Shown here one piece after another: positions 12,632-55,995 of a stretch of 64,000 nucleotides of DNA. The stretch is from Blastocystis sp. Blastoise (Eukaryota; Protista; Bigyra: Opalinata). How positions within the stretch are numbered: position 1 is the stretch's first letter; the number at the start of each line of letters is the position of its first letter. Made by a program: the position numbers and the translations under genes. The notes under the pieces are model-generated. The model searched no databases and was not told where the DNA came from. It saw nothing but the letters and a program-made list of their open reading frames with translations. The stretch covers positions 248,001 through 312,000 of the forward strand of contig JBBPEB010000028.1 in the NCBI GenBank assembly GCA_039096225.1, in the 5' to 3' direction.

Positions 12632-12640
12632 AACTACTGG
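12632..12640 (+). repeat. Left 9-bp target-site duplication AACTACTGG
   Basis: Directly precedes the left TIR. An identical 9-mer directly follows the right TIR (55987-55995). Confidence 0.95.
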
Positions 12641-13926: not shown

Positions 13927-13992
13927 ACTTAAGTCAGGATTTGAACCTGAAGATTGTCTAGAATGACCCTCTCTTGCCATTCAAGCTTAAGT
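13927..13992 (-). ncRNA. tRNA-like cloverleaf with B-box (left TIR copy)
   Basis: ACTTAAG-CTTG AATGG CAAG-AGAGGGTC ATTCTA GACAATCT-TCAGG TTCAAAT CCTGA-CTTAAGT, followed by ATTTTTTT. Not a canonical tRNA. Confidence 0.55.
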
Positions 13993-14952: not shown

Positions 14953-15123
14953 GTAAAATGGTACATTTTGTTTGAATTCTATTCCACATCCTGAACATTC
15001 ACATTTGCGATTAATCATTCGATACATTTCAGAATCATTTTTACCTTCTGAAATAGACTGAATACTCTTTCTATTAATATAAACCATCGATGGGAACAAG
15101 GGAGTCGGTGTTTGAACATCAAT
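14953..15123 (-). pseudogene. Copy of a VPS13 exon incorporated in the left TIR
   Basis: IDVQTPTPLFPSMVYINRK... is identical to the exon at 53504-53674. The ORF track shows the same peptide at 14857-15099 and 53528-53770. Confidence 0.75.
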
Positions 15124-16088
15124 CTATTTAATAATTATATATATATATATATATATAATATTGTATTATGTGTATACGATAATAACCGGCTTTAAAAACA
15201 GATAGACCAAATAATAATAATAATAGCATCCTAATGGAAACATATCCTATATACTATAACTATTACTATTAATAATATGTATAATATATAATAATAATAC
15301 ATACTCTAAATAAGATTACCTATATATATAATAATAATAATAGTAATGTAATAATTACACTATATATTTATAAAACGAAAACCTAAAAATATACAGAATA
15401 TCTATAATAGTAATAAAATAAAAATAATATTTTATAATAACACAACAACCAATATATCTATATATGTAATTATCTATATACAATAATTATGATTTTATAT
15501 AATAGTGCAATATCTATAACCTATATATGTAAATAATAATATCATTATATTAATAAGATAAACTATATGAATAATAATGATAAGTATAATAATAAGTATA
15601 GTATTAATAATAATAAATAGGATAAATATAATAAAAATAGATATTAAAAATAAAATAATAAACATAATAATAATAATAATAATAAATATATATACCCCAA
15701 TTTTTGTTTTTCTTTGTATATTGTTTACATATTTCTTCATATTTAGAAACATCATTTTCATTTTCAGTCACAATATCTGCATATTTATATTGTTGAATTG
15801 AATATTGATTTATTTTATCAACATCATTACTCTCTGTAATACATTGTCTTTAAAGAATATATATAATCATAATAAGAATATTTTTAAATAATATATATTA
15901 TTGACAAATATACAACTATATGTATAAATACTTTATAATTCTTAAAGTATGATTATTCATCCCTTCTTTAAATAAATATTTACTTAGTTCAAATTTATAT
16001 ATAGATATATCTAAATCTATTTCTATATATATATATATATAGTAGTATAAAATACTCTAATTTCATATATTCTATTATTATAGTTAAA

Positions 16089-16127
<39 letters not shown>

Positions 16128-16129
16128 TA

Positions 16130-18209: not shown

Positions 18210-18266
18210 CTATAGAGGAGATTAATACAAATATAAAATAATAATAATAATAATATATATATATAC

Positions 18267-20477
18267 TTTGAAATATCTAGAAATACCAGCAAAAGGTAAG
18301 TAACTGTCTTGAGCTCTTACTCGTCCATCTAATGTCATTTGAAGACAATTCTCTATTAAACTCTTCATAGGAGTATAGCCCAAAGATAATAAAGCTCTAT
18401 ATATAGTATTATTATTAGTATGATATAAATAATAAAAAATAATTTTTTATATATTAAATATATATAATAAAAAAAAAGAAATAAAAAATATATATGTATT
18501 AATTATTTCCATAATCTATTCAAAATAAAATAAATAATTAATTAAATATACGAATAAAAATAAAATATAAATACCTTCTCTTCAGATACAACAAGTATGT
18601 ATTAAAAATATTTATAATATAATTATATCTTTCAATAGCTACTTCTTTAGCTTCATCACGACCCTTTATATATAAACAGAAACATGTTCACAGAGTACAG
18701 GAAAAAGAAGAGGAGGTAATACTGATTAAAGAATGCATATATTTATAATAGATAATAGATACTATGATTATTATATATTAACAATATACATATATAATTT
18801 TTTATAAATATGTATATATATAAAGGATATTATTATTATCTCCAAGAGAAGCTTCAACACGTTTAACTATTTGTTTATATCATTCTTCATCAAATACTAG
18901 TTGATTATATATACTATATATATATTATTATTATTATTATATATAATCAGAAAATGTATATATAGTATAATGAATAGATTATATATATATATATACCTAA
19001 GAATAGTAGGCATAAATTAAATATATTCTAATGCCTCACCTTCTTTTTCAAATCAACCAAGAGATGCTTTTGTAGGATATAATCTATATATATATTTAAT
19101 ATTGTAAATAAATAAATAAATAAAAAATAAAGAATTAAATAAAAAATATATATATATACATACATTTCTTTAGCAATAATACTGAATTGCAGAACATAAT
19201 GTTCTTTATTAATTCTATTATATAACTGTAAAAGAATACTGGCCACCATCTCTATGACTTGAGAAGAACAATTATGGAAACTAATATATATACAATAGAA
19301 TATATATATATATATACTATTTAGTAAATTGAATAACAAAAGAAGAAGATAGTTTTTAAGCTTTCATGAAAGCATTTACATCATTTTATACTAATAAAAA
19401 TATGTAATAATAATAATAATAATGATAATAATATATATATATATATATATATATACCATATCACTATGAAGTTTATACCATTTTCTTTTTGATTTTCTTC
19501 TAAGAATAAATTCACTTGACTATCCTCTTCAGGAATTCCCGTGAATATACACTTCTTTTTCCAATTAGTAGTTTTAATAACTAGAGGAATATTCCATCTA
19601 TATAATAATATTAATAATAACATATAATAATAATAATCGTGGGAATATACTTGAAATCTTTGTCAATTTCTTGATGATTAATAAAGAAACGTTCTTGAGA
19701 TAATTCAAGTTACCCTATATATATATCCTATATATTATATATTATATATATATACATTATTTTCTTTAATAATTAGAAGAGGATATCCCGTGGTTTTAAT
19801 CCAGTTATCTAAAGGTCAGCTACATCAATTCCCGCGGGACAAGAGAGATGTTTCCAAAGATTTTCAGTAGCGGTATTCTTATATTTAAAAGTAGTTAAAT
19901 AACTAGATATATCCTTTCTAAAAGCTTCTCTTCCTATATATATATATATTAAACAATTATTTCCTATATTTTATTGATTATACATGGAATATATAAATAA
20001 TATATATATAAGTGTATATATATACCAATAAAGTTATAGAGCATCCAAATAACAGTAGCTCCTTTAGAATAACTGATTCCATCAAATATTTGACTGACTT
20101 CTTCTGGTCTATTCACGGTTATTTCTATAGGATGAGAAGACTTTATACAATCCTCAGATAACACACCCATATTATTCTCACTATATATAATAATATGTAT
20201 AATAATATATAAATTAAAATATATATATGATATATGTATATAATATATGTATAATATATTTATAATAACCATAATAACCATAATATATTAATAAAAAATA
20301 ATAATATATGAAACACTAAAAATAATAATAATAATAACATATATATACGTCACAAATGTATCTAGCATATGCCATTCTGGATGAATATGATCTAAGCATA
20401 TATAGTCCATAAAAGAGGTAACCCCCTATTTAACCATATATAAGTCCACAAAGTCATAGGGATTAAATCACTAAACA
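18267..20477 (-). pseudogene. Decayed M1 (puromycin-sensitive-like) aminopeptidase, C-terminal part
   Basis: WTYIWLN.G, DHIHPEW, SSHPIEITVNRPEEVSQIFDGISYSKGA, YKNTATENLWKHL, NWIKTTGYP, LSQERF, WNIPL, GRVRAQD. Frameshifts near 20420 and 19815; no HEXXH motif seen. Confidence 0.82.
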
Positions 20478-20715
20478 CTATATATTATATATATTATACT
20501 TATTAACACTTATAAGAACTATTATTATTATTAGTAATAGTAGTTGAATTATAATATAATTATAATTATGAACAATACCAAAATTATAAATAGAACTAAT
20601 GAAATATATAAAATATTTTAAAACAATTCTATAATAATAATAATATGTATAATAAAAGCAAATAAATAATATAACGATAAATGCAATAATACAACAATAT
20701 ATATATATTATTTAC

Positions 20716-21236
20716 CTTAACATCATTCTTATGTGGTTTAAACTATTTCTAAGTGGCTTTCTCTACAGCATTTATAATCTTGCCAACCATGTGAAATAAC
20801 CCTAATGACCGCTTTATAGGAATAATAATAAGATTGCAACGGAAACCCTAAGTAGAGAAAAGAGGGATATAAATAATATAAATAATAATAAGAATAATAT
20901 ATATCTAATATATATTATATAATTAATATTTATGCAATATATATAATATATTAATACTATATAAATCCTTTGAATTCGTGTGTATTGGTCATTTCATTAG
21001 ATAAATGACTATGCCTGTAACGGTACTTGTAACGCTCTTAACAAATCCCTCAGCACCATCTCTAATATCTACATATAATATAATATAAACATATTATGTA
21101 TATAATATAATATATTATATAATACATACCTAATAATGAATTTCTGTTTCTTTTTGTAAACATATTATTTCGTTCTCTTTTGAAGTCTTTATCTAATAAC
21201 ATCATAGTAAATACAGTATCAACACTTTCTGACATT
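20716..21236 (-). pseudogene. Decayed VPS13 C-terminal (APT1/ATG2_C-like) fragment
   Basis: MSESVDTVFTMMLLDKDFKRERN|DIRDGAEGFVKSVTSTVTGIV resembles the Gly-rich VPS13 C-terminus. In-frame stops follow. Confidence 0.5.
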
Positions 21237-24949: not shown

Positions 24950-26348
24950 CTAGAGCTTATAATTTCTTTTACATCTTTGAATTTTTCGTGGGGAAAATCT
25001 TTTTGCATGTCTGAGACGTAATTTGTTTGGATTACAGATAAATGATTTGTGTCCAATAGAAGAAGATTCCTTTTTATGATATTTCTTCTTAACATCACAG
25101 TGTCTTCTATTACGAAGTATATTTAATGAATACATTAGTCTATTATAAGCACATAGACTATATAATATAAAGAAACATATGAAGAAAATATATATACTTT
25201 TCATTTCTAAATTGTTCCAATTTCTTTTTTGATATTTTTTTACTATGATTACAATCGTTAATATCATTTAATTCATTTATTGATAAGAGTGCATCTGAGA
25301 CAGAAGTGAAACCTATATATATATAATAGAATCTAATACATATTATACGTCTTTTTATACTGTCATATCCTTTGAGAGATGACATAGCCTTAATTTGATT
25401 ATACATTTGAATTCTATCTCTTTCTGTTATATCATTGTAACTGATATTGGGTTCTAAAACCCATAAAGCATAATTATCGATAATATATTTTAGGTTTTTT
25501 AATAAATACATCCCACAATCAAAAGAATTATGCTGTTGTGGAGATACCTATGTATTTAAAATATTTAAAAAATATATAGCATACATATTTGTATATTCTT
25601 ATTTTAATAGCATTTGGAAGAATAGTATTATACATATATTCATTTTGTGATTCCATGATAAGTTTTCTTTGGTATTCTAATACTAAACACTTAACAAATC
25701 TATATATATATATTATTAGATTGTTTCTTTAAAGAAATACAAAATATATACATTTCGATTTCTTTATTACATGAATAGATATTGCATTTAAGAGAGTCAT
25801 AGCAGCGTATATAGAGCTAAAAAATTAATTTAATAATTGTTAATAATATACCTCAACACTAGTTGATGTTGGATTATGTTTTTTCTCTATATAAAGAAAA
25901 ATGATACTTTTTGATAGATTTTTAGCAATAAAAAATAATACCAAATAACTATTCATACCTTTTAAAAAACTGTTAATATCAAATGTATAGAGTAGCCAAT
26001 GATTATTTCTATAATAATAAAAATATACAATAATCATTCATACAATAGATAAGGAATCAAAACTACCGTTTTATCTGAATCTATTATTTTATTTACCATA
26101 GATATAAACTATAAAGAAATTAAGAAATAGTTATTATATCTACATACTGGTTTTTCATTAATGCATCTTTTATCAATTGAGAGTCTATCAAAATAGTTTA
26201 TTATATATATACAATTTTCTATTTTTAGAGATTGGCAGATAGATTCTCTTTTAATCCATAAATAGTTTGAATATGAATCTATTATATAATCATTAAGGTA
26301 TAACTCCTTTGAGTTAGTACATAAATCAACAGATTTCAACAATATTCC
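24950..26348 (-). CDS. Ulp1/SENP (peptidase C48) domain exons of the fusion gene
   Basis: Catalytic His (NHW, about 26000), Asp (YDSL, about 25797) and Gln/Cys (PQQHNSFDCG, about 25515-25541) occur in the correct order and frame. Confidence 0.88.
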
Positions 26349-29300
26349 CTATATATTATTCATATGTTTAGTATATATCATACCTTCGATCGTTCTACTA
26401 ATAAATTTTCGTATTCGTTGGTCTCTATATAAGTCTCTATGAAATATTGATATTAATAGCTTTATATACTGTCTTTATTATCGTCATCCATTTGACTATT
26501 ATCTGATACATTAATAATATCAGAACAATTAGATAAACGATTATCTGTTTTTCTACTATCTTTTTGTATATCAATAATTATATTATCAACATTTAAATTA
26601 TTTTTTTCGTTATCTGCTATATATGAAGAATAATACCATAATATAAAAATAATGTTATGTATAATTGTTCATGAAATCAAACTATGTTAAAAATAATATA
26701 TATACTTTCTTCATGAATTGATGATATGTCAACAGTAGGTGTAACTTCTATGTTTATTTCATTAAACAAAGAATCTGATGGTTTACTTTCGTTTCGTAAT
26801 ATTTTATCTATAAAAAGATAAAATAAATGTATGATTATATATATATTTATAAAATCATTGAAAGAATAAAGTATATTTATTTAATATACCATGATTATTG
26901 ATAGTATCTTCAGAAATAAGATATTTTACTATAGAAAGAAATATATAGCAAACTATAAATGAAATAATATACACAAGCGTTTCACGACTGGCTACGCCAG
27001 CCTACGCTTGGGTTTTGATAGTTGTCATCTCTTAATTATTATATTTTATGTTGATTTTTTTTTAAATATTATGTTTATTTTTATGTTTTTGTTATTCATT
27101 TCTATTTTTTTATTTTTAGGATGAAGACTATTTCATATTTTATAAATTATTATTTCAATTGTTTTAGTTGTTATCTTCTATTGTTTAGTTATTAGTTTAG
27201 TATATTCTAAATAATTTAATTCACAATTTATTCATAATTCCTATTTAACATTTTATATTACATTTTTTGAGTATTATTTCCTTTTTTATTTAGTATTATT
27301 TTAGCTATTTTTATTATTGATTATATATATTTATTGTTTATTAATGATAATTGATTAGCTCTTGTGTTTTAGTTTTGATCTTATTCATATTTCTATTTCT
27401 ATTTCTATTTCTATTTCTATTTCTATTTCTATTTCTATTTCTATTTCTATTTCTATTTCTATTTCTATTTCTATTTCTATTTCTATTTCTATTTCTATTT
27501 CTATTTCTATTTCTATTTCTTTTTCTATTTCTTTTTCTATTTCTATTTCTATTTCTATTTCTATTTCTATTTCTATTTCTATTTCTATTTCTATTTCTAT
27601 TTCTATTTCTATTTCTATTTCTATTTCTATTTCTATTTCTATTTCTATTTAGTTTTTAGTTTTCAATATTAATTCACTTTTCTTTGTTATTTCATTTATA
27701 ACTTTCTATGTATTTTATCAATTCATTTAGTTTTATAAATATTTAGTATTTTAAATAATATCAATATGATTATAAAATACTTTTTCTTTTAAAACATATT
27801 ATTATCACTTATACCCTACCTTTAAATATTTATGTTTTATTTGAATTAGTCTATATAATTATTATTGTGAGAAATAGCTTATTCTCTTGTCTAAAAAAAT
27901 ATTATATATTCTTTTTTATTCTTTTCATATATTGTTTTGTTTTATTTTTAAAATATTATAATTTTGATATCTATTTGTTTTTTTATATTTTATCCTTTCC
28001 TTTTATATATACTATTATATAAATATTTTAGAAATTTTATTATACAGCTTTTCTCAATTAATAAATGTTTAATTATATAAATAGTAATCATATCTTGATA
28101 TTATTTGATAAATATTATAATTTTTCTTTTATTATACTTATTTTAGTTTGAATTATTAATACAAAAGTACTCTTAATAATTAAAAGATATTTATTACTTT
28201 ATATAATAAACAAAAAAATTAGAGTCTTATTTTAATATTTATCATTAATAGAATCTATTCGTTTTAAGTAAAAGAGAATATTTATAGAGAAATTATCTTT
28301 TCATTATTTAAAATTAATTAATTCAAGTTTAATTCAATTTTTATAGTGTTATCAAAATCATTTCATTAAATGAAACGAAAAACTAAATATAAACCAAAAA
28401 TTACATTCCATTTCATAACTAAATAGATTTAAATACTTTGGAAACTTTACCTATTATACATAAAATATAGTTTATAAAACAAATAAGTTATTTTTAAAAA
28501 ACTCTAAAAGATTTTAACGTTTTTAAATACACATATCCACTTTTATTAAAACGAATTTTATATTAATATACATATATATTTAATTTATTATTTTAATTTG
28601 TAAAAAATAACTTGAATCTCTTTTGTTTTAAGTCACAATTACAAAGAATGAGTTCTTTTGAAAGACAAAAAACATTCTTTAAACAATAATAATTTTGTAT
28701 TTAGTGACATAAAAACGTATTATACAGTTTTAGAAACAATTAAAATCTTTTTACCCATTTTAACACTCCTATCAAACAGTCAACCATGTTTAATTAAACT
28801 AATTTTTAATATTTTATATTCTATAATAAGTCTATTTATTATTATTATAAAAAGTGACTTGAATCTCTTGACTTAACTATTGTAATTCTAAAAAAATAAT
28901 TTTTTGAACAACTTAAAATGTTTATTTATTGTAGATTTTAATATAAAATACTCTAAAAACACTCAATATATACTTATTGTAACCATTTTAGAAAAATAGA
29001 CTCATTTTAACATTTTGGTCAAACACACAACCACCTTTATTTCAAACAATTCTTTTATTATTATAAACATTAAACACTCTAATACTCATTTTTATAAAAA
29101 GTGTATTGAATCTCTTCACTTAAGACAGTCAAACAGACAATTCAAAATTATTTTATCCTTTAAACTCATTATAAAGTGATAATATTTATAGAATTGCTTT
29201 GATATGTGGTTTAGGACATATTTAACTACTTTTTTCAAAATTATGAGTCAACATGTGCATATACTCATACACTCGTCTAACTTATTTTTGACTAATTTTT

Positions 29301-32300
29301 TGAGAAATGCAATACATATAATGTCTAGTTTTCAAATATGTAAAAATTAATTGTCAAATATGAATTTGATTTGTCAACTTTCGGAAAATTTTTAGAAAAA
29401 TGATTTTTCAATTTTCAGTTTTTTAACATGTTATACTATTGACTCTACTGAACTCATTTCTTAATTAATTTTAAATGTTAAAATTTATATTATTAATATG
29501 TGTTATTCTCTATATTTATTTGCTAAAATTATATTAAATAATTAAATATTGACTGAGAAATTAATGTTATAAAGTATACCCTTTTTTCAAAAATTAATTT
29601 TTTTATGTTTTGCATATATAATTTTTTATCTCAAAAGTTATTTAATATTTTGATAATATTTTTATAAATATATAAACTATAGGTTGTCTAGTTTATATAT
29701 AAGTTTTATTTATTTTTTAAAAATTAATATTGATGGAGAAATTGTCAAAATAAACTATAGTATCCAAAATGCTTTCTTCTTTTTAAACGACTTATTTCAC
29801 TAATTAAAGATAATTAAAAGCATATTTATTTATTTAAAGCATATTTATGATATTTACAACTTAGTAAGACTGATAACTTACTTTTTAGAACAAACATTGT
29901 CTGTATCAGTTCAACATGTTGTCCTAACTTTTTCAAATAAATCATATTCAGTGTCCATGAATGATTCTAAACACTAATTAAAACGTTTTAAGAGTTTATT
30001 GAGTTAACATTGTCTGGTGATCTGTTGTCACAGTCTTTTAAAAACAAAATAAAATTATAAAATATGTTTATTTTGATATATAGTTTTTAAATATAAAGTC
30101 TAATGTCAAATAAAATTGTTAATGATGAAAATATAAACAAAAAACAAATGAAAACTTTTTAAGAAAATTTTTTGAAAGTCATTTTTTATTGAGTTCAACT
30201 ATTGACTCTTGTCACCTGAGTTTTCAATTAATTAAAAAAATGAAAAATATGTATCTGCTATGACATGTCTAGTTTCTAAATATGTTCTAACTTTTTTATT
30301 TTATTAAGAATTGATTGAGAAATCACAATAACAAACTATACCCTTTTTTTGAAAATTTTCATTTTTATGTTTTTCATATAAATGAATGTTTCTCAGTCAA
30401 TATTAAATATTTAGATAAAATAAAAAATATGTATCTGCAATAGCTTATCTTAATTATAATTATACTTTTATTTTTAAAAAATACCCAAAACTCAAGGAGA
30501 AAGACGAATAACAAACTATACTATCAAAACATCAAAATTTCTATTATCAAATATTTTCTTATTAAAACATATTATTAAAATATAAAACATATTTATGACG
30601 GATACAGAGTTAAATAAATACATTAAAGCTCAAATAAATTTATAAAGAAGGAATGTGTCGGATATCAGTTTGACTTTTGTTGTTATTTAAAGGAATTATT
30701 GTGGTTTCAGAGTAGTTGAGGTCAGTATCATAACAACTGAAACCATTTTAGAGTTTATAGTTAGTGATGTGTGTATTGATATGTTGTCAAGTTGTAAATA
30801 TAAACAAATTTACCCGTCAAAACTATTTATAAGACTAACCCGTCAATAAAAGTCAATTTTATAAAAATAAATATAGAGTATGTGAAGTGATATAGGAAAA
30901 ATAAGAAAACAATAAAAAATGAAAATGGAAAAATAAGTGTTTTTATAAAAATGAAAAATATTGGATAAAATAAAAATAATCCAATAATTTTGGTTAAAAT
31001 TTTGTGCGAAAATGGTTTTTTGCGATTTTTAGCCAGAAATTTAGAGTTTTTGAAAAATTTCTTTAACAGTCATTTTCAGAATTGTGTTCCGGATTTTATG
31101 ATGTTATTTTTATTTTATAAAAGTTAATAACAAAGTCAAGAATAGTGAAAGTCTGTGAGACACCGTACGCTACATGAACTAAATTAAGGATATTAATGAT
31201 GAATCCCATTCAATCTGTGTTATTTTTAAAGATGATAATTGTAGAAAACAATCTTGAACATATTCAGGTATAGAATCACCTAAGTAATATAATAAACTAA
31301 CAATAAATAAATACCTAATATTATGATTCTATTACATCTAAAAATTGATGCCTCAATTAATTGTTTCAGTTGATCAATGTTTTTGATATTTATTTCTGAC
31401 ACTATAACCAATTATAATATCAATAAAAACAAGAAATACAATTTAATTGAAGTTTGCTCATATTGTAGTATATATTAGTATTATATGGTTGTGAATCATA
31501 ATCAATACTAACTGTTTGATTCAAATCTAGATAATATAGTAAAAATATTAATAACGCAAATATATAAAAAGAAGAATATATATATATATCATTACTATAT
31601 ATATGAGAATAGGCAAAAAAATTCCCATTGGTCAGTTTTTGGAAAATGCATTTGATTGGTTAAGGTATACTATAGTTTGTACCCACAACTCCTCTAAACT
31701 TACGGGGAGTTAACTTTTGGTTGAAACACAGTTCAATAGGATATAACATGTAGTTGTGCACCGTATATTTGGTTAAGCGATATTGTTTATAATTAAAAAG
31801 ATATTAATAAAAGAACAGAAAACATGATTTTTGAGTCGTTTTTGATTGGCTCTTTGGGGTGACCCCGATAAAAATTGTTGACCAGACAATTGGAAAATAA
31901 ACATGGGGTAAACTTGATTTTTTATCAATCCCACAATATACGTTATCCGTGTTTATTCTTTATATTTATCTATTTTTTAATACTTTTTCATATTGAACAC
32001 GTGAGGCCTTAACGGTCAAATTTAGATTCTTAATTTGACATCATATTCTGATTCAGGAGGTCAAAAAACCTAGGTGTACCAATTTTCAGCTCCTGAGGAC
32101 GATTTTTGAGTGATCGATATTTTCTTTGATCTTCTTATAATCGACTAATATTACAGTATTGTAATTGATAGGTCCTCAAACTACTATAGTTAAAACAAAG
32201 TCTTAAAATAATGAGTTTGAGTGTCACAATTCTGAAAAATGTGAATTAAGTGGTCTTAGAGGATAAGATTCAATATAATGACTTTTATTTAGTAAACTAG

Positions 32301-33616
32301 AGATAATACTCTATACTATATTAAAAGAAGAGTCAAAACTATGAAAGTCAAAGTGTATGACCAAATGACAAAATGTGTCTTAAAAAGTAAAAGGGTGTCT
32401 ATATGTGTTTCAAATGTTAAGTCAAGTCAATTCTATGAATAAGAGCTTTAAATAAATAGTTTAAGGTTGTCAAATTCAAAAGAATGTGTAAAACATAGTC
32501 TTAAACTATGAATAAAAAATTTAGAGATATTAATCAGTGTACAGCTGTAGTAGCTCTACAACATATCAAAAGTACAAAGAAAATAATTTTTAGAGAGTGG
32601 ATGTGTGAAGGGTTGTGACTATTATTTAAAATTTATTTTTACTTCAGTTTGAGCAAAATCGTGAATTTCGTGCACTGTAGAAAAATTGAGTCAAAAAATC
32701 AACTCTAAGGGTCTTAATTTTGAAAAATGTAAAAATGAGTGACTTAGAGGACGAGATTCAATATTTGAGTGTTTAGTCATTAAACTAGACTGTATGATCT
32801 ATATTATATTAAAAGAAGGGACAAAACTATTTTGATCAAAGTGTATGACCAAATGGTAAAGTGTCTTTAAAAGTGTTATGGTGATGCCAGTTGTGTTTAA
32901 GGGTCTAAATCAAGTTTACTCTTAAAATATCAACTTTAAATAACCAGTTAAAGGTTGTCAATTTGTCAAAATGTTTTAAAGCGTGTCTTAAACAAAGAGA
33001 TTCAAGAAGTTGACTTTCATTTTATACATAACATGTATATATAAACACTTTACTAAAAGAACTTTGGAAAATATTGTGGATGAGTGTTTTGTCAAATGGC
33101 AAAGTTGTATCAAGAGTTGATTGTTTCCATTCATTTTTGTTTAAATCAATGTTTTATGTCTACTCTATAAAAATAACCTTTTAATACTGAGTTTAACGTT
33201 TAAAAGTCAACATGTGTGTTTGGTTTGTTTACTTTTGAGAGTTGAAAATCAGTTTAAAATGATAAATTATGACATACACGTCTATATTGATTGATTCAAA
33301 CAGTTTTGAGATGACTTAGTTGCTCGAGTTAAAATGGATTTTGTTCTCATTCTGACTGTTGTTGAGAAGAGGAAGTCTAAAAAAAACTATAAAAAGTTAG
33401 ATATATGTATGCAATGTCAAAATTGAAAAGTATAAAGTAAAATGGATTAAAATGAATTTAAAAAAGAGAATATATATATATATATATAATATGTAAAAAA
33501 TATTAAAGAAAAAGAAAAATAAGACTTCATGTCAGGAATTGAACCTGAAAACAATCTATAATGATTGTTTCTCTCCTTCTAGAGCATAAAGGGAGTTTAT
33601 AAATAATAATAATAAT

Positions 33617-33651
<35 letters not shown>

Positions 33652-36540
33652 GGAATGAAGGAAGTAGGAAGAAAGAAGTAGGAAGTAGGAAGAAAGAAGT
33701 AGGAAGTAGGAAGAAAGAAGAAAGAATGAAGAATGAGGAAGAATGAAGTAGGAAGGATGAGGAAGGATGAGGAAGAAGGAAGAATGAGGAAGGATGTAAA
33801 AGTAGGAATGATGAGGAAGAAGGAAGAATGAGGAAGAAGAAGGAAAAAACAAGGATGAAGGATGAGGAAGAAGGAAGAAGGAAGAATCAAGGATGGGAAA
33901 GAAGAAAGAAGGAAGCAGGAAGAAGGAAATGATGAATGATGAAGCAGGAAGAAGTAGGAAGAAGTAGGAAGAAGTAGGAAGAATGCCAGATGAGGAAGAA
34001 GGAAGTAGGAAGAATAAGGAAGACGGAAGAAGGATGAGAAAGAAGGAAGAAGTAAGTAGGATGAGGAAGAAGGAAGAATAAGGAAGGAAGAATGACGGAT
34101 GAGGAAGGAAGGAAGAAAGAAGTAGGAAGGATAAGAAAGACGGAAGAAGAAAGAAGGAAGAAAGAAGGAAGAAAGAAGTAGGAAGGATAAGGAAGAAGGA
34201 AGAAGTAAAATGAAGAAGAAAGAAGGAAGAAAGAAGAAAAAAGAACAAGAAGACTATAAAACCTATATATAATAGAAAACATATAAAAATAAATAAATAA
34301 TAAATAAATAATAAATAAATAAATATAATAAATAAATAAATAAATAAATATAATAAATAAATAAATATAATAAATAAATATAATAAATATAATAAATAAA
34401 TATAATAAATAAATAAATAAATATAATAAATAAATAAATAAAAAACATAAATAAATAAATAAAAAACATAAATAATAAATAATAAAAATGAAAATAATAA
34501 ATAAAATATAAATATATACCTAATAGATTAATCTGAAACCACAGACTAAAGAAGAATGACATGAAAAAACGAAGACGACAACACATCAACAACATTTTCT
34601 TTCCTATAGAATAAAAATAATTAAAAACTATTTAATAAATGATATAAAAAGACAAAATAAATAATATAGATAACAAAAATATAAAATAAAACAAAGTAAT
34701 GAGAGAATTAAAAAACAAATACTATAAAAATAAATATATATTATATACCTGACACAAAGTAATCAAATTAACATAGCCGTGACCACTTCAAGAACTCTTT
34801 ACTACAACAACCAAGACAAATATAAGAGAATCCTATAAAAAAGTGTATTATTTTGAATAAATAAATAACTATATAGATAGATAGATATAATGCAATATAA
34901 AACAATATCAAATAAATAAATAAAATATACAGAATCAAATAATATAATCAAATATTTAAAAAATGTAAAAAACTATGTTTTTTGGGTACCATAAATGTTT
35001 TTAATAGAAAATGACCCAATTATTACTTTTGTAAATAAATCAATGAAAACTCAAGGGTATTTTTGATTTCTATTAGATTTTAAGAAGCATATTTTTATAA
35101 AAGACCCTTTTCTTTAAAAGTAGAAATATAAACACAATTTTTATATTAAGAGAAAACACTTATTTTTTATAATTAAAATATTATCTAAGATGCCTCAGAA
35201 GGCATGATGCTGTCAAGATCGAAGTGTGTAGATGGAAAAATATACATTTCTCAAAAACTTTCAGGTTCTTCTACTCAATAGGATCCAGTTGTGTATGTTC
35301 TTGGTCTTGGTATTACTTGCTCTGATGGTCTTAAAGGTTCTTCTATGTTATTTGTATCATACGGAGGCTGTGGTGTTGCCTGTTATGCTAACTGTGAAGG
35401 TTCTTCTGTTGCTTTAAATGATGCTAATGGTTCTGTTTACGTAGATATAGGTTCCTCTTATGGTATTGAAGGTATGTTGCCAATCATTTATTTTATTATA
35501 TTTTTCTTTTGTTATTTCTTTGTATATATAGGTTCTTCAGTTGTTGTGCATGTAAACAGTGGTGTAGATGAAGATATCTGTGTAGTGTTGAAGGTATGTT
35601 GTCATTCATTTATTTTTCTTTTTTACTTTTATATATATTTAGGTTCTTCTGATGTTTTCAATACTGCTGCTGATGTTGTTGGTGATCAGGTAGACTGTTC
35701 CTATGGTATTAAAGGTATATATATATATTGTCATTCATTTATTATTATTTTTTTTTTATTTATTATTTGTCTATTACTGTTTCTTTATAGGTTCTTTTAT
35801 TGTTGTGTGTGTGGTTGCTGAAGGTGTTAATAATTAAGGTATGTCTATTTTTTAAATTTAATTTAGTTTATTTTTATTTATTATTTATATATAGGTCCTT
35901 CTATTCTGATCGAGTCTTCTATTATAGGTAATGATACAGGTATATTCATATTTCTTTATTTTTTAATTTCTTTTTATTTTATTAATACTAATTTGTTCAT
36001 ATATAGGTTGTTCAACTCAGTTATGATATCATGGTTATTCTTCTGTTCCTTCTTTAGAAGGTATATATATATATATATTTATTGTTTATTCATGTATATT
36101 ATTATTATTATCTCAATCATTTATTATATATAGGTGTACCATCTAATTTGGAATACTATCATCATGATGATAATGTTTATTCTTATAAATAGAAATATAT
36201 CTAAAGGTATATATATATATTACATATATTTATTATAATGTATCTTTTATATATATATCTTTATCTATATAGGTGATAGTGTGGATAGGTCTCTAATACT
36301 TAAAGGTATATATATATATCATATATTTATTATTATATCTCTTATATATATATATATATATGTCTTTTATTTTTTAGGCTTTTCTAATATGATGGGTATA
36401 CTTAGAATGTTTTTATTTTTTTAATTTTCTTTTTCTTTTGCTTATTATTTTTTATTTATATTTTCTTTCTTTATATATCTATTTATTTACTTTGTTTAGC
36501 TTTAGCTAATCTATATTTACTTATTTAATATAATACTTTG

Positions 36541-36571
<31 letters not shown>

Positions 36572-38099
36572 TGTTTTTTTGCTTTGTTTTTTAATTTTAA
36601 TTGTTGACTATTAAAACAATTGTTAAATTAGTTAATATTAATAGTATGGATCATTTTAATCTTTGTATTTAATTTAATTAAAACATTTATTGATCTCATC
36701 TAATTCTATATAGACTCACCAATGTAATCATATCAATAATTGACTTATTATTAAGTTTTGAATCCTCCACATACTTTTTTTATATAGTTTATTATATGTA
36801 AAATTGTAAAAATTAATAAATGTTAAAAAATAGGCTCTTCAACTAAGAGATTAAAAATTCTAAAAATTGTTTAATATAAAATAGCATGCACTCTACAACA
36901 TGTAAAAAATTAAAATAATTTTATTTTTCACAAGTGAATTAAAAATGTGTTTGAGTTGTCTAAAAATTTAAAAGAGTTTGTCTGTTTGTTTAAAACTGTG
37001 TTTTTGTTATAATATGAAAGTACTGACTTTTAAAAACAAGTTTAAAGGGTTTTATTTAAAAAAAATATAATAATAAGTTTTAGGAGGATGCGATTCAATA
37101 CGAAACATTTTATTTATCAAACTATAATTTATGTTTTAAACTATATCAAAACGAGGGACAGAAATACACTTGACAAAGTGTATGACCAAATGTAAAAGGC
37201 TTATAAAGAGTGTTAAAATCGTTATTAACGTGTTTATAGAGTTATGCTGAGTATAGTGTGTAAATGTTAGCTTTTTAAATTAACTTTAAGTGTGTCAACT
37301 TTTCAAAATGTATAAAAAAGGGTCTCTATATCAGAGATTCAAGACATCAAATTTTAATTAATATATAACACAATGAGATCTATATTGTGTGAAAGTTATG
37401 TTTAAAACTATTTTGATACACTGGATATCAAAATGGTGAAGTCTCTCTAAAACCGATATTGTTGACACCTTTATGTATAGAAATGCTATTTAAAGTGACT
37501 TTATTAATATTAATTCTAAAACTATGTGTTTAAGTCGTTAAAGTGAAAATGAATGTTGACTTTGTTGTGTTAAATGGGTTTTGGTTTTATGAAATGATTA
37601 AAGAAAGTGTAAACTACCTTATTATAATCTATTTAAAATGATTTTACATAATAATGACTTTCAATACTTAACATTGTGAGCCATTTCTAAATTTATTAGC
37701 TTTAGAAACTCCATAATAATTAAAATAGTAACTTAACTATTTATAAATACAATATATATTTTTAAAATAATAAATAACAAATATAATGATTCAAAAAGGG
37801 TTTCTCATTTTTTTAAGTATTGTTTTTAGTTTTTCAGATACTATTCAAATGATCAATTTAATAATTATATCAGGAATTGAACCTGATTATAATCAACAAA
37901 TGATTATTACTCTCCATATAGAGTATAAGAAGTGTTAATAAAATAATATATATAATATATAATATATAGTATATAATATATATTATATATTATATATAAT
38001 AGATAATAATGAAAAAAAGAAAATAAAAGCCAAACTGTTATTATTCTTTGTAGCCGCAGGTCCGGTGCCGTTAGGCCCCGGACCTGCGGCGTGACCCTA

Positions 38100-38134
<35 letters not shown>

Positions 38135-38405
38135 CTAATATAAGAATTTTGATTTTAATTTTATATGAAATGAAAGACGTCAGAAATTTCTCCATGCTAC
38201 ATTTGCCTAAAGATAGCAATTGGTAGCATTTCTTTATTATGAAAATAATAAAATTTATACAATCAATATGAATAATTCCATTTGAAAAAATCATTGGCTT
38301 CAATGGATTATTTGGAGGAACTATAAAAGTAAAATTGTTTATATCTATATATACAATAAACATTGCAGTTGAAGTTTGTATCATCGAAATAAAATGGTAA
38401 TTGAA

Positions 38406-38457
<52 letters not shown>

Positions 38458-41400
38458 AGTGAAAATAATCGCTTTACTGTTTTTTGCAACTGATACTGTT
38501 GGCAAACAAAAGTACTACTATTTTTACTTATTAATGTTCCTTCTAACGAAAACATAAATACAGAAACATCACTCGGTATTTGTAACGTTTCCTATATATC
38601 TGATTATATGCACCATAATATAGATACTTCTAATAAATTATAAAAACCCATGTTAGATGTTATATCATCTATTGGAAGGATAATAACTTCTCCTGTTTTG
38701 ATGTTGATACACTGCAATATTTTCTATACAAAATGAGATAGAAAGTTATATATAGTATTATTTACCTCTTTATTAACAAATATTAATGAATCTGGTTTAA
38801 GAATTGATACAGAAGGAGGTATAGACGAATAGACGGTATATGTCAAGTTGGTTTCTTGAGTTGATGCTTTTCTTTCGGAATCTTTTACAACGTCAAGAAT
38901 AGCATCTAATGATATTAATATCCTTAATTTAGTTCATGTAGCGTACGGTGTCTCACACACTTTCACATTTATTGACTTTGTTATTAACTTTTATAAAATA
39001 AAAATAACATCATAAAAACCGGAACACAATTCTGAAAATGACTGTTAAAGAAATTTTTCGAAAACTCTAAATTTCTGGCTAAAAAACGCAAAAAACCATT
39101 TTCGCACAAAATTTTAACCAAAATTATTGGATTATTTCTATTTTATCCAATATTTTTCATTTTTATAAAAACACTTATTTTTCGTTTTTTATTTTTTATT
39201 GTTTTCTTATTTTTTCTATATCTACTCACATTCTTTATATTTATTTTTATAAAATTGACTTTTATTGACGGGTTAGTCTAATAAATAGTTTTGACGGGTA
39301 AATTTGTTTATATTTAGAAGTTGACAACATATCAATACACACATCACTAACTATAAACTCTAAAACCATTTTATATGCAATGATACTGACCTCAACTACT
39401 CTGAAACAACAATAATTCCTTTAAATAACAACAAAAGACAAACTGATATCCAACACATTCCTTCTTTATAAACTTATTTGAGTTTATTCAAGTGATTTTG
39501 AATCAATACATGTCAGAAATATGTCTTTTAGTTGTTTAAAAAGTTTTAATAAGAAAATATTTGATAATAGAAATTTTGATGTTTTGATAGTATAGTTTGT
39601 TATTCGTCTTTCTCCTTGAGTTTTGGGTATTTTTTAAAAATAAAAGTATAATTATAATTAAGATAAGCTATTGCAGATACATATTTTTTATTTTATCTAA
39701 ATATTGAATATTGACTGAGAAACATTCATTTATATGAAAAACATAAAAATGAAAATTTTCAAAAAAGGGTATAGTTTGTTATTGTGATTTCTCAATCAAT
39801 TCTTAATAAAATAAAAAAGTTAAAACATATTTAGAAACTAGACATGTCATAGCAGATACATATTTTTCATTTTTTTAATTAATTGAAAACTCAGGTGACA
39901 AGAGTCAATAGTTGAACTCAATAAAAAATGACTTTCAAAAAATTTTCTTAAAAAGTTTTCATTTGTTTTTTGTTTATATTTTCATCATTAACAATTTTAT
40001 TTGACATTTTACTTTATATTTAAAAACTACATACCAAAATAAACATATTTTACAATTTTATTTTGTTTTTAAAAGACTTTAACAACAGATCACCAGACAA
40101 TGTTAACTCAATAAACTCTTAAAACGTTTTAATATGTGTTTAGAACCACTCATGGATACTATATATCACTTATTTGAAAAAGTTAAGACAACATGTTGAA
40201 CTGATACAGACAATGTTTGTTTTAAAAAGTTAGTTATGAGTCTTTATGAGTTGTATATGTCATAAATAAGCTTAAAATAAATAAATAAGTTTTTAATTGT
40301 CTTTAATTAGTGAAATAAATCGTTTAAAAAAAGAAAACATTTTTGATACTATAGTTTATTTTGACAATTTCTCCATCAATATTAATTTTTAAAAAATAAA
40401 TAAAACTTATATATAAACTAGACAACCTATAGTTTATATATTGATAAAAATCTTATCAAAATATATAATAACTTTTGAGATAAAAAATTATATATGAAAA
40501 ACATAAAAAAATTATTTTTTGAAAAAAGGGTATACTTTATAACATTAATTTCTCAGTCAATATTTTATTATTTTATATAATTTTAACAAATAAATACATA
40601 GAATAAGATATATTAATTATATTATTTTTAATATTTGAAATTAATAAAAAAATGAGTTCAGTAGAGTCAATAGTATAACATGTTAAAAAACTGAAAATTG
40701 AAAAATCGTTTTTCTAAAAATTTTCTGAAAGTTGACAAATCAAATTCATATTTGACAATTAATTTTTACATATTTGAAAACTAGACCTTATATGTATTGC
40801 ATATCTCAAAAAAATGGTCAAAAGTGGAGTTGACGAGTGAATGAGTATATGCACATGTTGGCTCATAATTTTATAAAAAGTAGTTCAATATGTCCTAAAC
40901 CACATATTAGGACAATTCTATAAATATTATCACTTTATAATGAGTTTAAAGGGTAAAATAATTTTGAATTGTCTGTTTGACTGTCTTAAGTGAAGAGATT
41001 CAAGTCACTTTTTGTAAAAATGAGTATTAGAGTGTTTAATGTTTATAATAATAAAAGAATTGTTTGAAATAAAGGTGGTTGTGTGTTTGACCAAAATGTT
41101 AAAATGAGTCTATTTTAAAAAAATGGTTAGAATAAGAAAGTATTGAGTGTTTTTGGAGTATTTTATATTAAAATCTACAATAAATAAACATTTTAAGTTG
41201 TTTAAAAATTTGATTCTTTAGAATTACAATAGTTAAGTCAAGAGATTCAAGTCACTTTTTATAAAAATAATAAATAGACTTATTATAGAATATAAAATAT
41301 TAAAAATTAGTTTAATTAAATGTAGTTGACTGTTTGATAGGAATGTTAGAATGGGTAAAAAGATTTTAATTGTTTCTAAAACAGTATAATACGTTTTTTT

Positions 41401-43302
41401 GTCACTAAATACAAAAATATTATTGTTTAAAGAATGTTTTTTATCTTTCAAAAGAACTCATTTTTTGTAATTGTGACTTTAAACAAATGAAATTCAAGTT
41501 ACTTTTTATAAATTAAAATAATAAATTAAATATATATGTATATTAGCATAAAATTAGTTAAAATAAAAGTGGATATGTGTATTTCAAAACGTTAAAGTCT
41601 TTTAGAGTTTTTTTAAAATAACTCATTTGTTTTATAAACTATATTTTATGTATGATAGTTACAGTTTTTAAAGTACTAAATCTATTTATGATATAGAATG
41701 TAATTTTTGGTTTATATTTAGTTTTTCGTTTCATTTAATGAAATGATTTTGAAAACATTATAAAAAATGAATAGATAATTTTTAAAAATAATTCTTTTTT
41801 TCTTTTATAAAAGAAATTCTATATATGATAAATATTTAGAAAGAACTCTATGAGTTATTATCGATTATATAGAATAATATATATATTTTAATTATTAAAA
41901 ATATATATATATTTTTTTAAATCCAAATTGAAATAGGAGTAATAAAAAATAATAATATTATAAACATTTGAATCTGATAGTATTAAAATATAGTAACTAT
42001 TACATATAATTAAACATTTATTAATAAGAAAAGGGGTATAATAAAATATTAAATATATATATATAATAGTATATATAAAAAGAAATGATAGAATATAAAA
42101 AATCAAATAGAGATAAAAATGATAATAATTTAAAATGGAATAAAATAATATATGAGAAAATTTATAAAAGAATAAATAATATTTTTTAGACAAAAGAGTA
42201 AGTTCTTTCTCATAATAATAATTATATAGAATAATTAAAAATAAAAAATAAATTCTTAAAGATAAGAAATAACTGATAATAATAAGTTTTAAAAGAAAAA
42301 ATATTTTATAATCATAATAATATTGTTTAAAGTATAAAATATTTATAAAACTAAATGAATTTATAATTACAAAAACAGTTATAAATAAATTAACAAAGAA
42401 AAGTGAATTAATATAGAAAACTAAAATATAAATTTAAATCTAAATAGAAATCTAAATAGAAATAGAAATAGAAATAGAAATAGAAATCTAAATAGAAATC
42501 TAAATAGAAATAGAAATAGAAATAGAAATAGAAATAGAAATAGAAATAGAAATAGAAATAGAAATAGAAATAGAAATAGAAATAGAAATAGAAATAGAAA
42601 TAGAAATAGAAATAGAAATAGAAATAGAAATAGAAATAGAAATAGAAATAGAAATAGAAATAGAAATAGAAATAGAAATAGAAATAGAAATAGAAATAGA
42701 AATAGAAATAGAAATTGAAATCTAAATTGAAATAGAAATATGAATAAGATTAAAAATAAAATATAAGAGCTAATCAATTATTATTAATAAACAATAAATA
42801 TATATAATCAATAATAAAAATAGCTAAAATGATACTAAATAAAAAAGGAAATACTACTCAAAAAATGTAATATAAAATGTTAAATAGGAATTATGAATAA
42901 AGTGTGAATTAAATTATTTAGAATATACTAAACTAATAACTAAACAATAGAAGATAACAACTAAAACAATTGAAATAATAATTTATAAAATATGAAATAG
43001 TCTTCATCCTAAAAATAAAAAAATAGAAATGAATAACAAAAACATAAAAATAAACATAATATTTAAAAAAAAAACCAACATAAAATATAACAATTAAGAG
43101 ATGACAACTATCAAAACTCAAGCGTAGGCTGGCGTAGCCAGTCGTGAAACGCTTGTATAATATTATAATAATAATACATACATACTTTCACGAAATGGGT
43201 TTTGTTGTTCATAATATTTTCTGAATACTAAATATTGGTTGAATTCCAAGGGGAATTCTAAAGAATGTACACTAGTACATGGAACCTATGTATATATATA
43301 GT

Positions 43303-43364
<62 letters not shown>

Positions 43365-45846
43365 CGAATATCTCTAGGAATTTTGAATTTAATTCTTTAG
43401 TAAACTCTATATATTTCTATATAGAGTTTATAATGGATATATACATACCGATATAATCAATATTAATATTGTCTGAATCTAATAGATCAAATAATCTATA
43501 ACCATAATTAACCATTTTATCTTCTATTCTACTGGTTCTAAATATTGGCTTATAAAAAAGGGATGAAAACAAATAAAAAATGCATGAATTATATGGTAAT
43601 ACATTTAAAGATTTATATAGATTCTTTATAAAATAAGTAGGAAGTGTTTTGAAATCTAAATTCTTTTCTTTAATTAAGAAAATAATATGTTTACATATAA
43701 TATTATTGTGTGCTATGTTACAACTACATTGAAGAGTTTTTGTAGGTATATAATATACTTCACTAACTTCTTTTCTACTATTACAGCAAATATAATATTT
43801 ATTTATTTCAATTGAGGCTAGATATAGTACTTCTTTTTTATCGTATTCTGTTATGTTACTTATGGAAGAAGGAATTATTCTGTGAATTAAACAATCATCT
43901 TGATTCTTATTCATCATCTCAATGGTCTTTATGTGATAAAAAAAGGGGAATAGGCATAAAGGCGATTTTCGGATGGATTCTAACCATAATGAATGGATTT
44001 GCTCCGTTGGATTATTACTAAGAATAGTAATAATACTATTCTTAAAAGAAAATCTACAAAATGACTTACAACATCCATTAAGGTAATCCTTTAATATAAT
44101 AATATCTTGCGAATTTATTGACTCATTATTATCATTAATTGATTCATTTGATTTATATAGGGCATCTTCTATAACTGCATCAGCATCTTCTTGCTTCGAC
44201 GCGTTACAATAATTAAAAAAAAGATTATTAACAGATTTAGATGGTTTAATTTTGGTTGTTGTATACATTATCGAACGTGCATGAAAAATGCACATAACAT
44301 TAACAGAACTTGGGAATATGTCGTTTATAGCTTTACCAATTCCAACTAAGCCATCAGAATGAATAACATATTTCGTTTCTGGATTCATACCTAAATAATA
44401 TTAATTTATTACTAACAAGATAAATTATAGAATGAGTATTAATAAGATGAATAATATGACGAATAATAATATGATGATTAATAATAAGATGAATAATAAT
44501 ATGATTAATAATATGATGAATAATAATATGATGATTAATAATATGATTAATAATAAGATGAATAATAATAAGATGAATAATAATATGATTAATAATATAT
44601 GAATAATAATAAGATGAATAATAAGATGAATAATAATAAGATGAATATTAATAAGATTAATAATATGAATAATAATATGAATAATAATATGAATAATAAT
44701 ATGAATAATAATATGATTAATAATAAGATCAATTATAATAAGATTAATATGAAATATAAGATGAATATTAATTAGATGAATATTAACAAGACGAATTATA
44801 ATAAGATGCATATGAATAATAATAATATATATACCATGAGTAGAAAGGAAACTGAATAGATCTTTCCATGTATTGGAACCTTCTCCGTAAAGATCTATCA
44901 TGTAACCTAGTAGATACTTTTTATTATATTGAGATAGTGTTACCATATTATATATAAGAAATTTGTCCTTTGATTGTGAATGGGTAGCGTCAATAAATAT
45001 CTCATTATTATATAATCTAGAAAGTTCGTTGACAATCCTTCTATATATTACTATTATCCTAAATAGCTTTTTGTCACTTTTATTAATATAGACTTTATAA
45101 TCAATATTTTCAACAGCTTTGATTGAGTATAAAATTGAAGGAATCATATTATATGAATCAATATAATCTCCAAAGATATTATAGAATAATTTCTTATGCC
45201 ATTTATCTAGTATTGTAATTGAAGTATCTGGAAATAATGTTTTCTCTACTGATTTAAAACTTGAGAAGAGACCAAATGGGTCCTGTAGAAAGTAATAATA
45301 CATCTTTGTTTCAAAATCTTCATATACTACCATTGTCTTAGTATATGTTTTCTGAAGAAGTGTGCTATTCACTATATGAAAAATAATATTTATATATTGA
45401 AAAAACATTTATAGAATATTTTAATTATTAATTATATGATGATAGTTTATGATATAGTTTATTCATACAAAAAAATAGTTAAAATAATAAAAATATACAT
45501 GATATGTCAAACACCTCTTTAACATCATATAACTGATTAGTTATCGCTATATTAATATTAATATTGAAATATAAATATATATATGAATACAATCATGATT
45601 GTGTTTGCAATAATAATACTTAATTGTATATGAATCACCACTTTTTTTAAATTTTATAATAAAATTGCATTTCTGTGTTGTACAAACATAGACCAAGCAA
45701 TGACCACCACGTTGTCTAATTGAGTAGTGAAACTTAGATTTGTAATTGCGAACATCAACTAAAATTTCTTCGCGTGATGTGTATTCTTCTTTGAAGCCTA
45801 TCGATGCAAGTGTATTACTTGTAGATAGAGAGAAAGGATCAGCCAT
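24950..45846 (-). CDS. MULE transposase-Ulp1 (C48) protease fusion gene, about 27-28 exons, interrupted by three Helitron-like insertions
   Basis: N-terminal CTTQKC...KHNH Zn finger; DDE core IFIDATH / IHSDG / CIFH / SNNPTEQ; SWIM CSC...ICKHI; C48 motifs YLNDYIIDSY, LIP, NHWLL, YDSL, PQQHNSFDCG. Manual splicing keeps one frame from ATG 45846 to TAG 24950 once the insertions are removed. Confidence 0.8.
26974..31190 (-). mobile_element. Non-autonomous Helitron-like element, family A copy 1 (4,217 bp)
   Basis: 5' TC(CTTAATTTAG...), 3' GC-rich hairpin then CTTG; sits between A and T with no TSD. Removal restores the host exon frame (ATA-T|GT donor). Homologous along its length to 38921-43155. 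Confidence 0.75.
27389..27650 (+). repeat. (TTTCTA)n hexamer microsatellite inside family A copy 1
   Basis: Directly visible; the counterpart (TAGAAA)n lies at about 42440-42740. Confidence 0.95.
33525..33591 (-). ncRNA. tRNA-like cloverleaf with B-box (Helitron B copy 1)
   Basis: CTTTATG-CTCT AGAAGG AGAG-AAACAATC ATTATA GATTGTTT-TCAGG TTCAATT CCTGA-CATGAAG, followed by T-runs. Confidence 0.55.
33651..34250 (+). repeat. Purine-rich (GAAG/GGAAGAA/GTAGGAA) low-complexity tract in Helitron B
   Basis: About 600 bp of almost pure A/G on the + strand. It generates the spurious F/L/S/P ORFs on the - strand. Confidence 0.9.
35264..36306 (+). pseudogene. Decayed series of short exons captured in Helitron B
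   Basis: About eight short segments bounded by AG|GT acceptors and mostly AAG|GTAT donors, several starting GSS. Stops are present and no family was recognised. Confidence 0.35.
37863..37930 (-). ncRNA. tRNA-like cloverleaf with B-box (Helitron B copy 2)
   Basis: TTATA-CTCT ATATGG AGAG-(TA)ATAATCA TTTGT TGATTAT(AA)-TCAGG TTCAATT CCTGA-TATAA. Confidence 0.5.
38921..43155 (+). mobile_element. Non-autonomous Helitron-like element, family A copy 2 (4,235 bp)
   Basis: A|TCCTTAATTTAG...CAAGCGTAGGCTGGCGTAGCCAGTCGTGAAACGCTTG|T. Removal rebuilds a short GTATGT...CATTAG intron of the transposase gene with matching phase. Confidence 0.75.
42440..42740 (+). repeat. (TAGAAA)n hexamer microsatellite inside family A copy 2
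   Basis: Directly visible, with TAGAAATCTAAA variant units. Confidence 0.95.
43450..45846 (-). CDS. MULE transposase core exons (Zn finger, DDE, SWIM)
   Basis: ORFs 45547-45846, 44425-45408 and 43417-44388 join via GT-AG introns, with a 48-nt exon near 45499-45546. All catalytic motifs are present. Confidence 0.9.
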
Positions 45847-55986: not shown

Positions 55987-55995
55987 AACTACTGG
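55987..55995 (+). repeat. Right 9-bp target-site duplication AACTACTGG
   Basis: Identical to 12632-12640. Confidence 0.95.

Follow-up and report, generated by a model that had tools for sequence, protein, structure and literature searches.

Mutator-like elements (MULEs) encode a transposase that binds the elements’ terminal inverted repeats (TIRs) and carries out cut and paste with a DDE core; SWIM and N-terminal zinc fingers are common, but not universal, in the Mutator/MULE superfamily. C48 enzymes remove ubiquitin-like modifiers. Zisupton unites a transposase with SWIM finger and a SUMO-protease domain in one protein with a KDZ-type core. Ulp1 domains of ‘Mutator TPases’ from hydra, lancelet and others were aligned by Bao et al. 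in 2010, who proposed a role of the protease in transposition and repair (PMC2836005). For the presence of Ulp1 or OTU proteases in many unrelated transposons, a reason has been proposed, not tested, in the literature found. Target-site duplications (TSDs) of the superfamily are 8–11 bp long. A survey of 1,631 MULEs gives TIRs of 14–500 bp (PMC6446971). Here we analyse a transposase–protease gene inside a 43-kb Mutator element of Blastocystis sp. Blastoise, a gut protist of tortoises; the stretch of DNA analysed, hereafter the window, is 64,000 nucleotides long and has ~22% G+C (C5:248001-312000 of the 33.3-Mb, 34-contig genome).

A preliminary description of the window had set the tethering of protease to transposase apart from the Ulp1-like passenger genes of some plant MULEs. 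Ulp1 is found in Ginger1 and Mutator transposases (PMC2836005) and MULE-ULP proteins in rice (PMC12903978), and the fusion is of an already known kind. Distinctive here are TIRs of 0.7–5.1 kb, up to 27 introns, no relative detected outside the genome and an ongoing loss of introns. Our explanation, which is very probably correct, is that a single gene and one spliced mRNA specify a ~1,380-residue transposase–protease fusion in a cut-and-paste MULE, as the state ancestral to a copy that is now broken. The sequence itself shows the element ends, the TSD, the catalytic motifs, the open frame, a conserved exon skeleton and, for a sister family (family C), ten splice borders within linker and protease.

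The gene lies on the minus strand, from an ATG at 45846 to a stop ending at 24950. With three inserts excised (38921–43155, 31589–38100 and 26974–31190), it reads through 1,380 codons with no internal stop, in 28 exons separated by 27 GT–AG introns of 33–444 nt (predicted splicing). Exons were called by a simple splice model without homology after removal of the inserts, and three of them were then corrected against paralogues; similarity searches with the spliced model were made exon by exon, and the joined frames were checked for stops and motifs. The single stop-free frame of the preliminary description is borne out, as are both its ends, and every junction that it quoted is present in the spliced model. 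Its continuity across all three excisions needs one amendment: inserts 1 and 2 are intronic, but insert 3 interrupts exon 15, a single base short of that exon’s end. The window gene is called family A below, and its paralogues in the same genome form families B, C and D. The parts of the gene are:

24950..45846, minus strand: complete transposase–protease gene, predicted to have 28 exons and, without the inserts, 1,380 codons
45591..45846, minus strand: exon 1, N-terminal C-x4-C...H-x-H finger, a putative DNA-binding domain
44835..45371, minus strand: exon 3, with D229 as the first catalytic Asp (FIDATH); PF10551 and PF00872 are matched by the paralogues
43449..44390, minus strand: exon 4, with D293 as the second Asp, the CxxH motif, E410 as the catalytic Glu and the SWIM finger
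43186..43406, minus strand: exons 5–6, of 44 and 100 nt, lengths equal in families B, C and D
38132..38905, minus strand: exons 7–12, linker, in which exons 8–9 (38723–38457) are a possible ubiquitin-like domain
31191..31526, minus strand: exons 13–15, linker, of 87, 87 and 90 nt, the last base of exon 15 being at 26973
26384..26928, minus strand: exons 16–19, acidic spacer of poor conservation
25349..26348, minus strand: exons 20–26, Peptidase C48 domain with His1122, Asp1154, Gln1212 and Cys1218
24950..25312, minus strand: exons 27–28, C-terminal tail, in which a conserved basic motif is putatively similar to a nuclear localization signal and kept also in family D, which lacks the C48 domain

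Two other ideas about the gene were set aside. Stop codons made by polyadenylation were rejected, the TGTTTGTT motif being absent near the gene; tortoise isolates of Blastocystis keep encoded stops (PMC12129017). A leucine-rich-repeat reading of exons 13–15 was a low-recognition lead only and was dropped.

A stop-free spliced frame is on its own weak evidence, because the same parser reaches the end of the sequence in two of four local shuffles. The real genes score 442–483, with 62–73% coding, against at most 93 for the shuffles; the shuffle paths that reach the end are ~15% coding, and spliced shuffle parses at most 23%. The nearly equal exon lengths and phases of the sister families, which were parsed independently, are stronger support than the open frame alone. 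The SWIM exon finds five sister copies in the genome at 41–43% identity and one at 31–35%, and all five sister copies have C48 matches downstream on the same strand. Family B (the C33, C4 and C26 copies) measures 7.9 kb when uninterrupted, with 705-bp TIRs, and family C (the C2 and C4 copies) 16.4–16.7 kb, with TIRs of ~5.1 kb. After the SWIM exon, the exons of the window gene are 44, 100, 140, 96, 135, 52, 60, 75, 87, 87 and 90 nt long, those of family B 44, 100, 140, 96, 135, 52, 63, 75, 87, 87 and 84 nt, and those of family C 44, 100, 146, 421, 87, 87 and 84 nt, where 421 equals 96+135+52+63+75. Lengths and phases match across the families over exons 4–15 as well as in the protease, and 19 of the 21 exon pairs compared between families A and B align (z 3–42, 22–54% identity). 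The family C model is open over 1,408 codons. The one interruption of the family B frame is a TAA in the C33 copy, where both other copies have a Leu codon. From the SWIM exon to exon 8, families B and C have introns of only 34–107 nt, which leaves little room for a second promoter.

The uninterrupted paralogues hold the MULE transposase and the Ulp1-family (C48) protease in one gene, as proposed earlier, and not as the separate genes that had been named as the contrary outcome. Four NCBI models (KAK8795504.1, KAK8803205.1, KAK8814268.1 and KAK8803343.1), all named ‘hypothetical protein’, have Transposase_mut and Peptidase_C48 in one chain. The C26 copy of family B is split by ~28 kb of inserted DNA and is represented by two proteins in the NCBI models; the insertion (L021:4986, L022:4170) has GC-rich inverted ends of its own, those of a further TIR element family. 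Family D is a single-copy gene at C4:1.74 Mb (L020:3186-8071), on the minus strand just downstream of a host gene. It keeps the transposase, linker and basic tail and lacks the protease exons, and its CxxH and Glu motifs are degenerate, with the His of CxxH and the NNPxEQ motif lost; no bracketing TIR was found around it in the 10 kb examined. The protease is thus dispensable in this one relative, which may be a domesticated transposase. Relatives outside this genome did not appear: a profile of three SWIM exons run against 1.84 billion proteins returned two proteins, both from this genome, and word-index searches with the core and with the protease gave no relative beyond it.

The two family C copies, on C2 and C4, have different TSDs and flanks and are free of substitutions across the ~6.3 kb that their TIRs enclose. 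Recent transposition is shown by such near-identity of copies whose TSDs are distinct. The C2 copy (L016:4639-6574) and the C4 copy (L017) differ by ten indels, each exactly one whole GT–AG intron: the C4 copy lacks eight introns, in two runs of four, and the C2 copy lacks two that are next to each other. Eight of these indels fall at splice borders predicted beforehand and two at family A/B positions, and five further A/B introns are absent from both C copies. All 15 missing introns lie 3′ of intron 7 (0/7 versus 15/19), in tracts, so that the events are not independent. Loss is the derived state, because the positions are common to A and B and some also to D. The comparison confirms the predicted splicing of these introns, which lie in the linker and the protease, and would do so even if the differences were an artefact. 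No precise intron loss was seen among the family B copies or the cargo copies described below. The likeliest cause is recombination with a cDNA made from the spliced mRNA; the genome has ~20 reverse-transcriptase open reading frames (ORFs). From the balance of ten precise losses against no substitution in ~6.3 kb comes a broader reading, to which we give slightly less than an even chance: that this is a lineage-specific MULE variant with multi-kb TIRs and a transposase–SWIM–ubiquitin-like–C48 protein, whose own spliced RNA rewrites its copies, so that introns are lost in tracts before point mutations appear. Such rewriting would proceed by cDNA- or RNA-templated repair, possibly at breaks from transposition or duplication. 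As a separate observation, many of the reverse-transcriptase ORFs are 2,400–2,800 codons long and stand in tandem pairs.

The DDE core residues D229, D293, C314-x2-H317 and E410 are present in families A, B and C. PF00872 is above the Pfam cut-off in the paralogues, and SWIM and N-terminal zinc finger motifs occur in all three families, the PF04434 match (E 0.004) being below cut-off. By its core motifs, TIRs and TSD, the element is assigned to the Mutator superfamily. Window exon 26 matches the C48 profile with 26.1 bits against a cut-off of 20.7, and the paralogues match with E 1.5e-11 and 7.9e-13; the protease His, Gln (oxyanion) and Cys are present in families A, B and C, and the Asp in A and C. 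The earlier label of deSUMOylase goes further than the matches do: the nearest solved sequence to the C48 domain is SENP8 (weak, E 0.009–0.035), a NEDD8 protease, followed by SENP5/2/7 and Ulp1, all weak. The linker had been described as belonging to no recognised family, to which its first part may be an exception, since this appears weakly ubiquitin-like. Exons 8–9 resemble ubiquitin by eye, have feature-atlas values of 0.76–0.80 with ubiquitin clusters and give a weak Pfam match (E 0.05–0.1). Their single-sequence fold is a weak prediction (pLDDT, the predicted local distance difference test, 34), a local ubiquitin profile gave no score for the family C exon, and the ubiquitin-like stretch lacks a terminal Gly-Gly motif in every family.

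Several observations weigh against the single fused product. In intron 4 of the window gene, AGs stand at 32 nt and at 42 nt, of which the earlier (43416) leads to EIYRVY-stop; retention of introns 4–5 would give a transposase-only product; none of introns 4–7 is among the precise losses, so that the join from SWIM exon to linker is one that we infer; family B has Asn in place of the protease Asp; the NCBI models are predictions, skip several exons of the present model and differ; and with no outside relative found, function rests on family knowledge. The first of these points would fit two main products of alternatively spliced transcripts: a short transposase that ends after the SWIM exon and carries out transposition, and a less abundant long form that includes the protease. 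The acceptor near 43416, raised in the preliminary description, is a real AG in the window copy, and family B has extra AGs, whereas the family C counterpart of intron 4 has a single AG; with intron 4 (A, B) or introns 4–5 (C) retained, the frame ends within ~30 codons. Yet four families retain the 44-nt exon 5, and intron losses of a cDNA-like kind imply that transcripts of the 3′ half are spliced; we consider this pair of products rather unlikely. Far less credible is a pair of tandem genes in the manner of Kaonashi, with the joined frame as a parsing artefact. Although this arrangement is known in plants (PMC4948706, PMC13317346), shuffled DNA can yield a stop-free spliced frame and NCBI splits the C26 copy in two, that split is explained by the inserted DNA, there is neither an intergenic gap nor a conserved second start, and phases are conserved in three diverged families.

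Even within a single-gene fusion, the protease may not be aimed at host SUMO; it could act on its own polyprotein, on NEDD8 or on ubiquitin, perhaps docking on the ubiquitin-like linker. That SENP8 is the best (weak) solved match and that exons 8–9 give weak ubiquitin-like signals speak for such a target, but the stretch has no Gly-Gly end in any family, its predicted fold is poor and the local profile missed the family C exon, and we hold the idea as a distinct possibility that we would sooner doubt than adopt. As to the modifier itself, SUMO takes about half of our expectation, and the other half is shared equally by NEDD8 and by ubiquitin or another modifier. The ten intron differences, for their part, could be an artefact of assembly or polishing in which spliced reads leaked into the consensus. 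The lack of substitutions over ~6.3 kb could reflect homogenisation by polishing, and one sentence of the genome paper pairs DNA and RNA reads for ‘polishing and annotation’ (PMC12129017). Its methods, however, give racon with nanopore reads, PolyPolish with Illumina DNA, and POLCA, for which the read type is stated only as ‘short-read’ (PMC12129017), and the losses are reciprocal, run in tracts, include five more that both copies have in common and lie, all 15, 3′ of intron 7, in a genome with reverse-transcriptase ORFs. We regard an artefact as improbable.

Helitrons are recognised by a 5′ TC, a 3′ hairpin followed by CTRR, insertion between A and T, and the lack of a TSD. The three inserts that interrupt the transposase–protease gene are Helitron-like by these signs:

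38921..43155, plus strand: insert 1, intronic, 4,235 bp, non-autonomous, 5′ TC, 3′ hairpin followed by CTTG, placed between A and T
31589..38100, plus strand: insert 2, 6,512 bp, 5′ TC, strong 3′ hairpin then CTAG, in the TA run of intron 12
26974..31190, minus strand: insert 3, 4,217 bp, of the insert 1 family, inside exon 15

All three have the 5′ TC, an A/T target without duplication and a 3′ hairpin (z −3.4 to −7.6); the CTTG ends of inserts 1 and 3 are a variant of the CTRR consensus, and insert 2 ends in CTAG. The family of inserts 1 and 3 has ~40 members in the genome, eight of them near 100%, and has hit one family B copy as well. No RepHel piece was found in the three inserts; elsewhere in the genome there are ~50 RepHel matches, in ORFs of ~1,600 codons each. 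Helitrons are unmentioned in the main text of the genome paper (PMC12129017). Because insert 3 is exonic, interrupting exon 15 one base before its donor, with the unspliced frame stopping three codons into the insert, this copy cannot make the fusion by ancestral splicing. The fusion is therefore the pre-insertion, ancestral state of the window copy, which now encodes at most a truncated transposase.

The preliminary description missed the 43.3-kb Mutator element around the gene. Its parts, outside the gene itself, are:

12632..12640: left 9-bp TSD, AACTACTGG, direct repeat
12641..15153: left TIR, 2,513 bp, starting GAGAAC, with one mismatch to the right arm
15154..21200 (approximate limits), minus strand: captured piece of an M1 aminopeptidase gene with introns (Peptidase_M1, ERAP1_C), with 93–94% copies on C1 and C29
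47328..53473, plus strand: captured piece of a VPS13 gene with introns (VPS13_VAB), with ~90% copies on C16, C34 and C3
53474..55986: right TIR, 2,513 bp, inverted repeat
55987..55995: right 9-bp TSD, AACTACTGG, direct repeat

The element spans 12641–55986, or 43,346 bp (~28 kb without the inserts). A view of the 2.5-kb inverted pair as two independent insertions was rejected, as the TSD is found only at the outer ends. The TSD is 9 bp in all six full copies (the window and five sisters). At 705, 2,513 and ~5,140 bp in family B, the window element and family C, the TIRs exceed the surveyed range, by up to ten times. The aminopeptidase and VPS13 pieces are Pack-MULE-like cargo. The VPS13 piece sits between the gene start and the TIR, and the distance from ATG to TIR is 7.6 kb, versus 11 and 126 nt in sister elements. 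In family C, the NCBI models at C2:179-196 kb and C4:62-78 kb continue into a piece of Cse1 (exportin), apparently inside the ~5.1-kb TIR, so that both arms may contain duplicates of host gene pieces. At C1:322032-330584, a 96% copy of the window TIR is followed by the same aminopeptidase cargo without a transposase match, a probable non-autonomous derivative.

Further observations concern the element and its surroundings. AT-rich segments in and beside the TIR (14360–14530 and 15210–15690) have 70–80% matches at dozens of loci, often in tandem, spaced by ~110 bp, and as inverted pairs (C15, C16, the family C TIRs); they are possibly a subterminal repeat common to many foldback-like elements, with low complexity as the alternative. 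Two inverted SDHA copies ~17 kb apart (C18:586444 and 603555) may be located in the arms of a different giant foldback element. Within the window, 21900–24500 on the minus strand, which separates the cargo from the stop codon of the transposase gene, is A-rich with broken frames of short length and looks like a decayed intron-poor ORF, and 58433–59254, also on the minus strand, is a host gene of Pumilio/NOP9 type (PF22493, E 1e-29) that adjoins the right side of the element.

The single-gene reading suggests a mechanism that follows the order of the protein: a zinc-finger DNA-binding domain, the DDE core, the SWIM finger, the linker, the C48 cysteine protease and the basic tail. The transposase would bind the TIRs and produce the 9-bp TSDs, and tethering would bring the protease to the element ends. 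There it may free the transposase itself, or chromatin and repair proteins, of a ubiquitin-like modifier, so that steps of silencing, turnover or repair that depend on SUMO or NEDD8 could be undone; the role that Bao et al. proposed is similar (PMC2836005). Since family D does without it, the protease would be an accessory. Later, three Helitron-like elements hit the window copy, the exonic one cutting off the protease. Young elements with intact motifs, a protease-less relative and a cultured host together offer a test system for why proteases accompany transposases. The intron differences may matter more than the fusion: if they are present in the DNA, intron loss outruns point mutation, and the reverse-transcriptase model of intron loss becomes directly testable.

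Among known systems, the element resembles Mutator/MuDR-Ulp1 (PMC2836005), which also has the Ulp1 domain in Mutator transposases; it differs in its stramenopile host, its up to 27 introns and its TIRs of 0.7–5.1 kb, and the searches found no sequence link. Ginger1 likewise has introns and joins a DDE transposase to a C-terminal Ulp1 (or OTU) domain in one polypeptide, but on a Gypsy-integrase-type core, with TIRs of 44–270 bp and 0–4 introns (PMC2836005). The KDZ core of Zisupton differs too, the Pfam matches here being to MULE and Transposase_mut. Like Pack-MULEs, the window element is bounded by TIRs and TSDs and contains host gene pieces with introns (VPS13 and M1 aminopeptidase here, Cse1 in family C); unlike them, it also carries a transposase gene and spans 43 kb. 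In Kaonashi/KI-MULEs (VANDAL), CUMULE and the grapevine C48-MULEs, as in the present families, C48 is kept or lost by lineage (PMC4948706, PMC13317346, PMC2528002), yet in those plant elements it is described as a second gene, is fused to VANC in the KI-carrying Vandals and often sits in non-TIR elements, whereas here it is in the transposase frame. With one frame and conserved phases across exons 4–15, the window element is judged not to be of the Kaonashi type. In rice, ULP is fused to MULE transposase domains in predicted single proteins, as here, although at the level of gene models and in another lineage (PMC12903978); the rice and Blastocystis fusions are probably independent captures.

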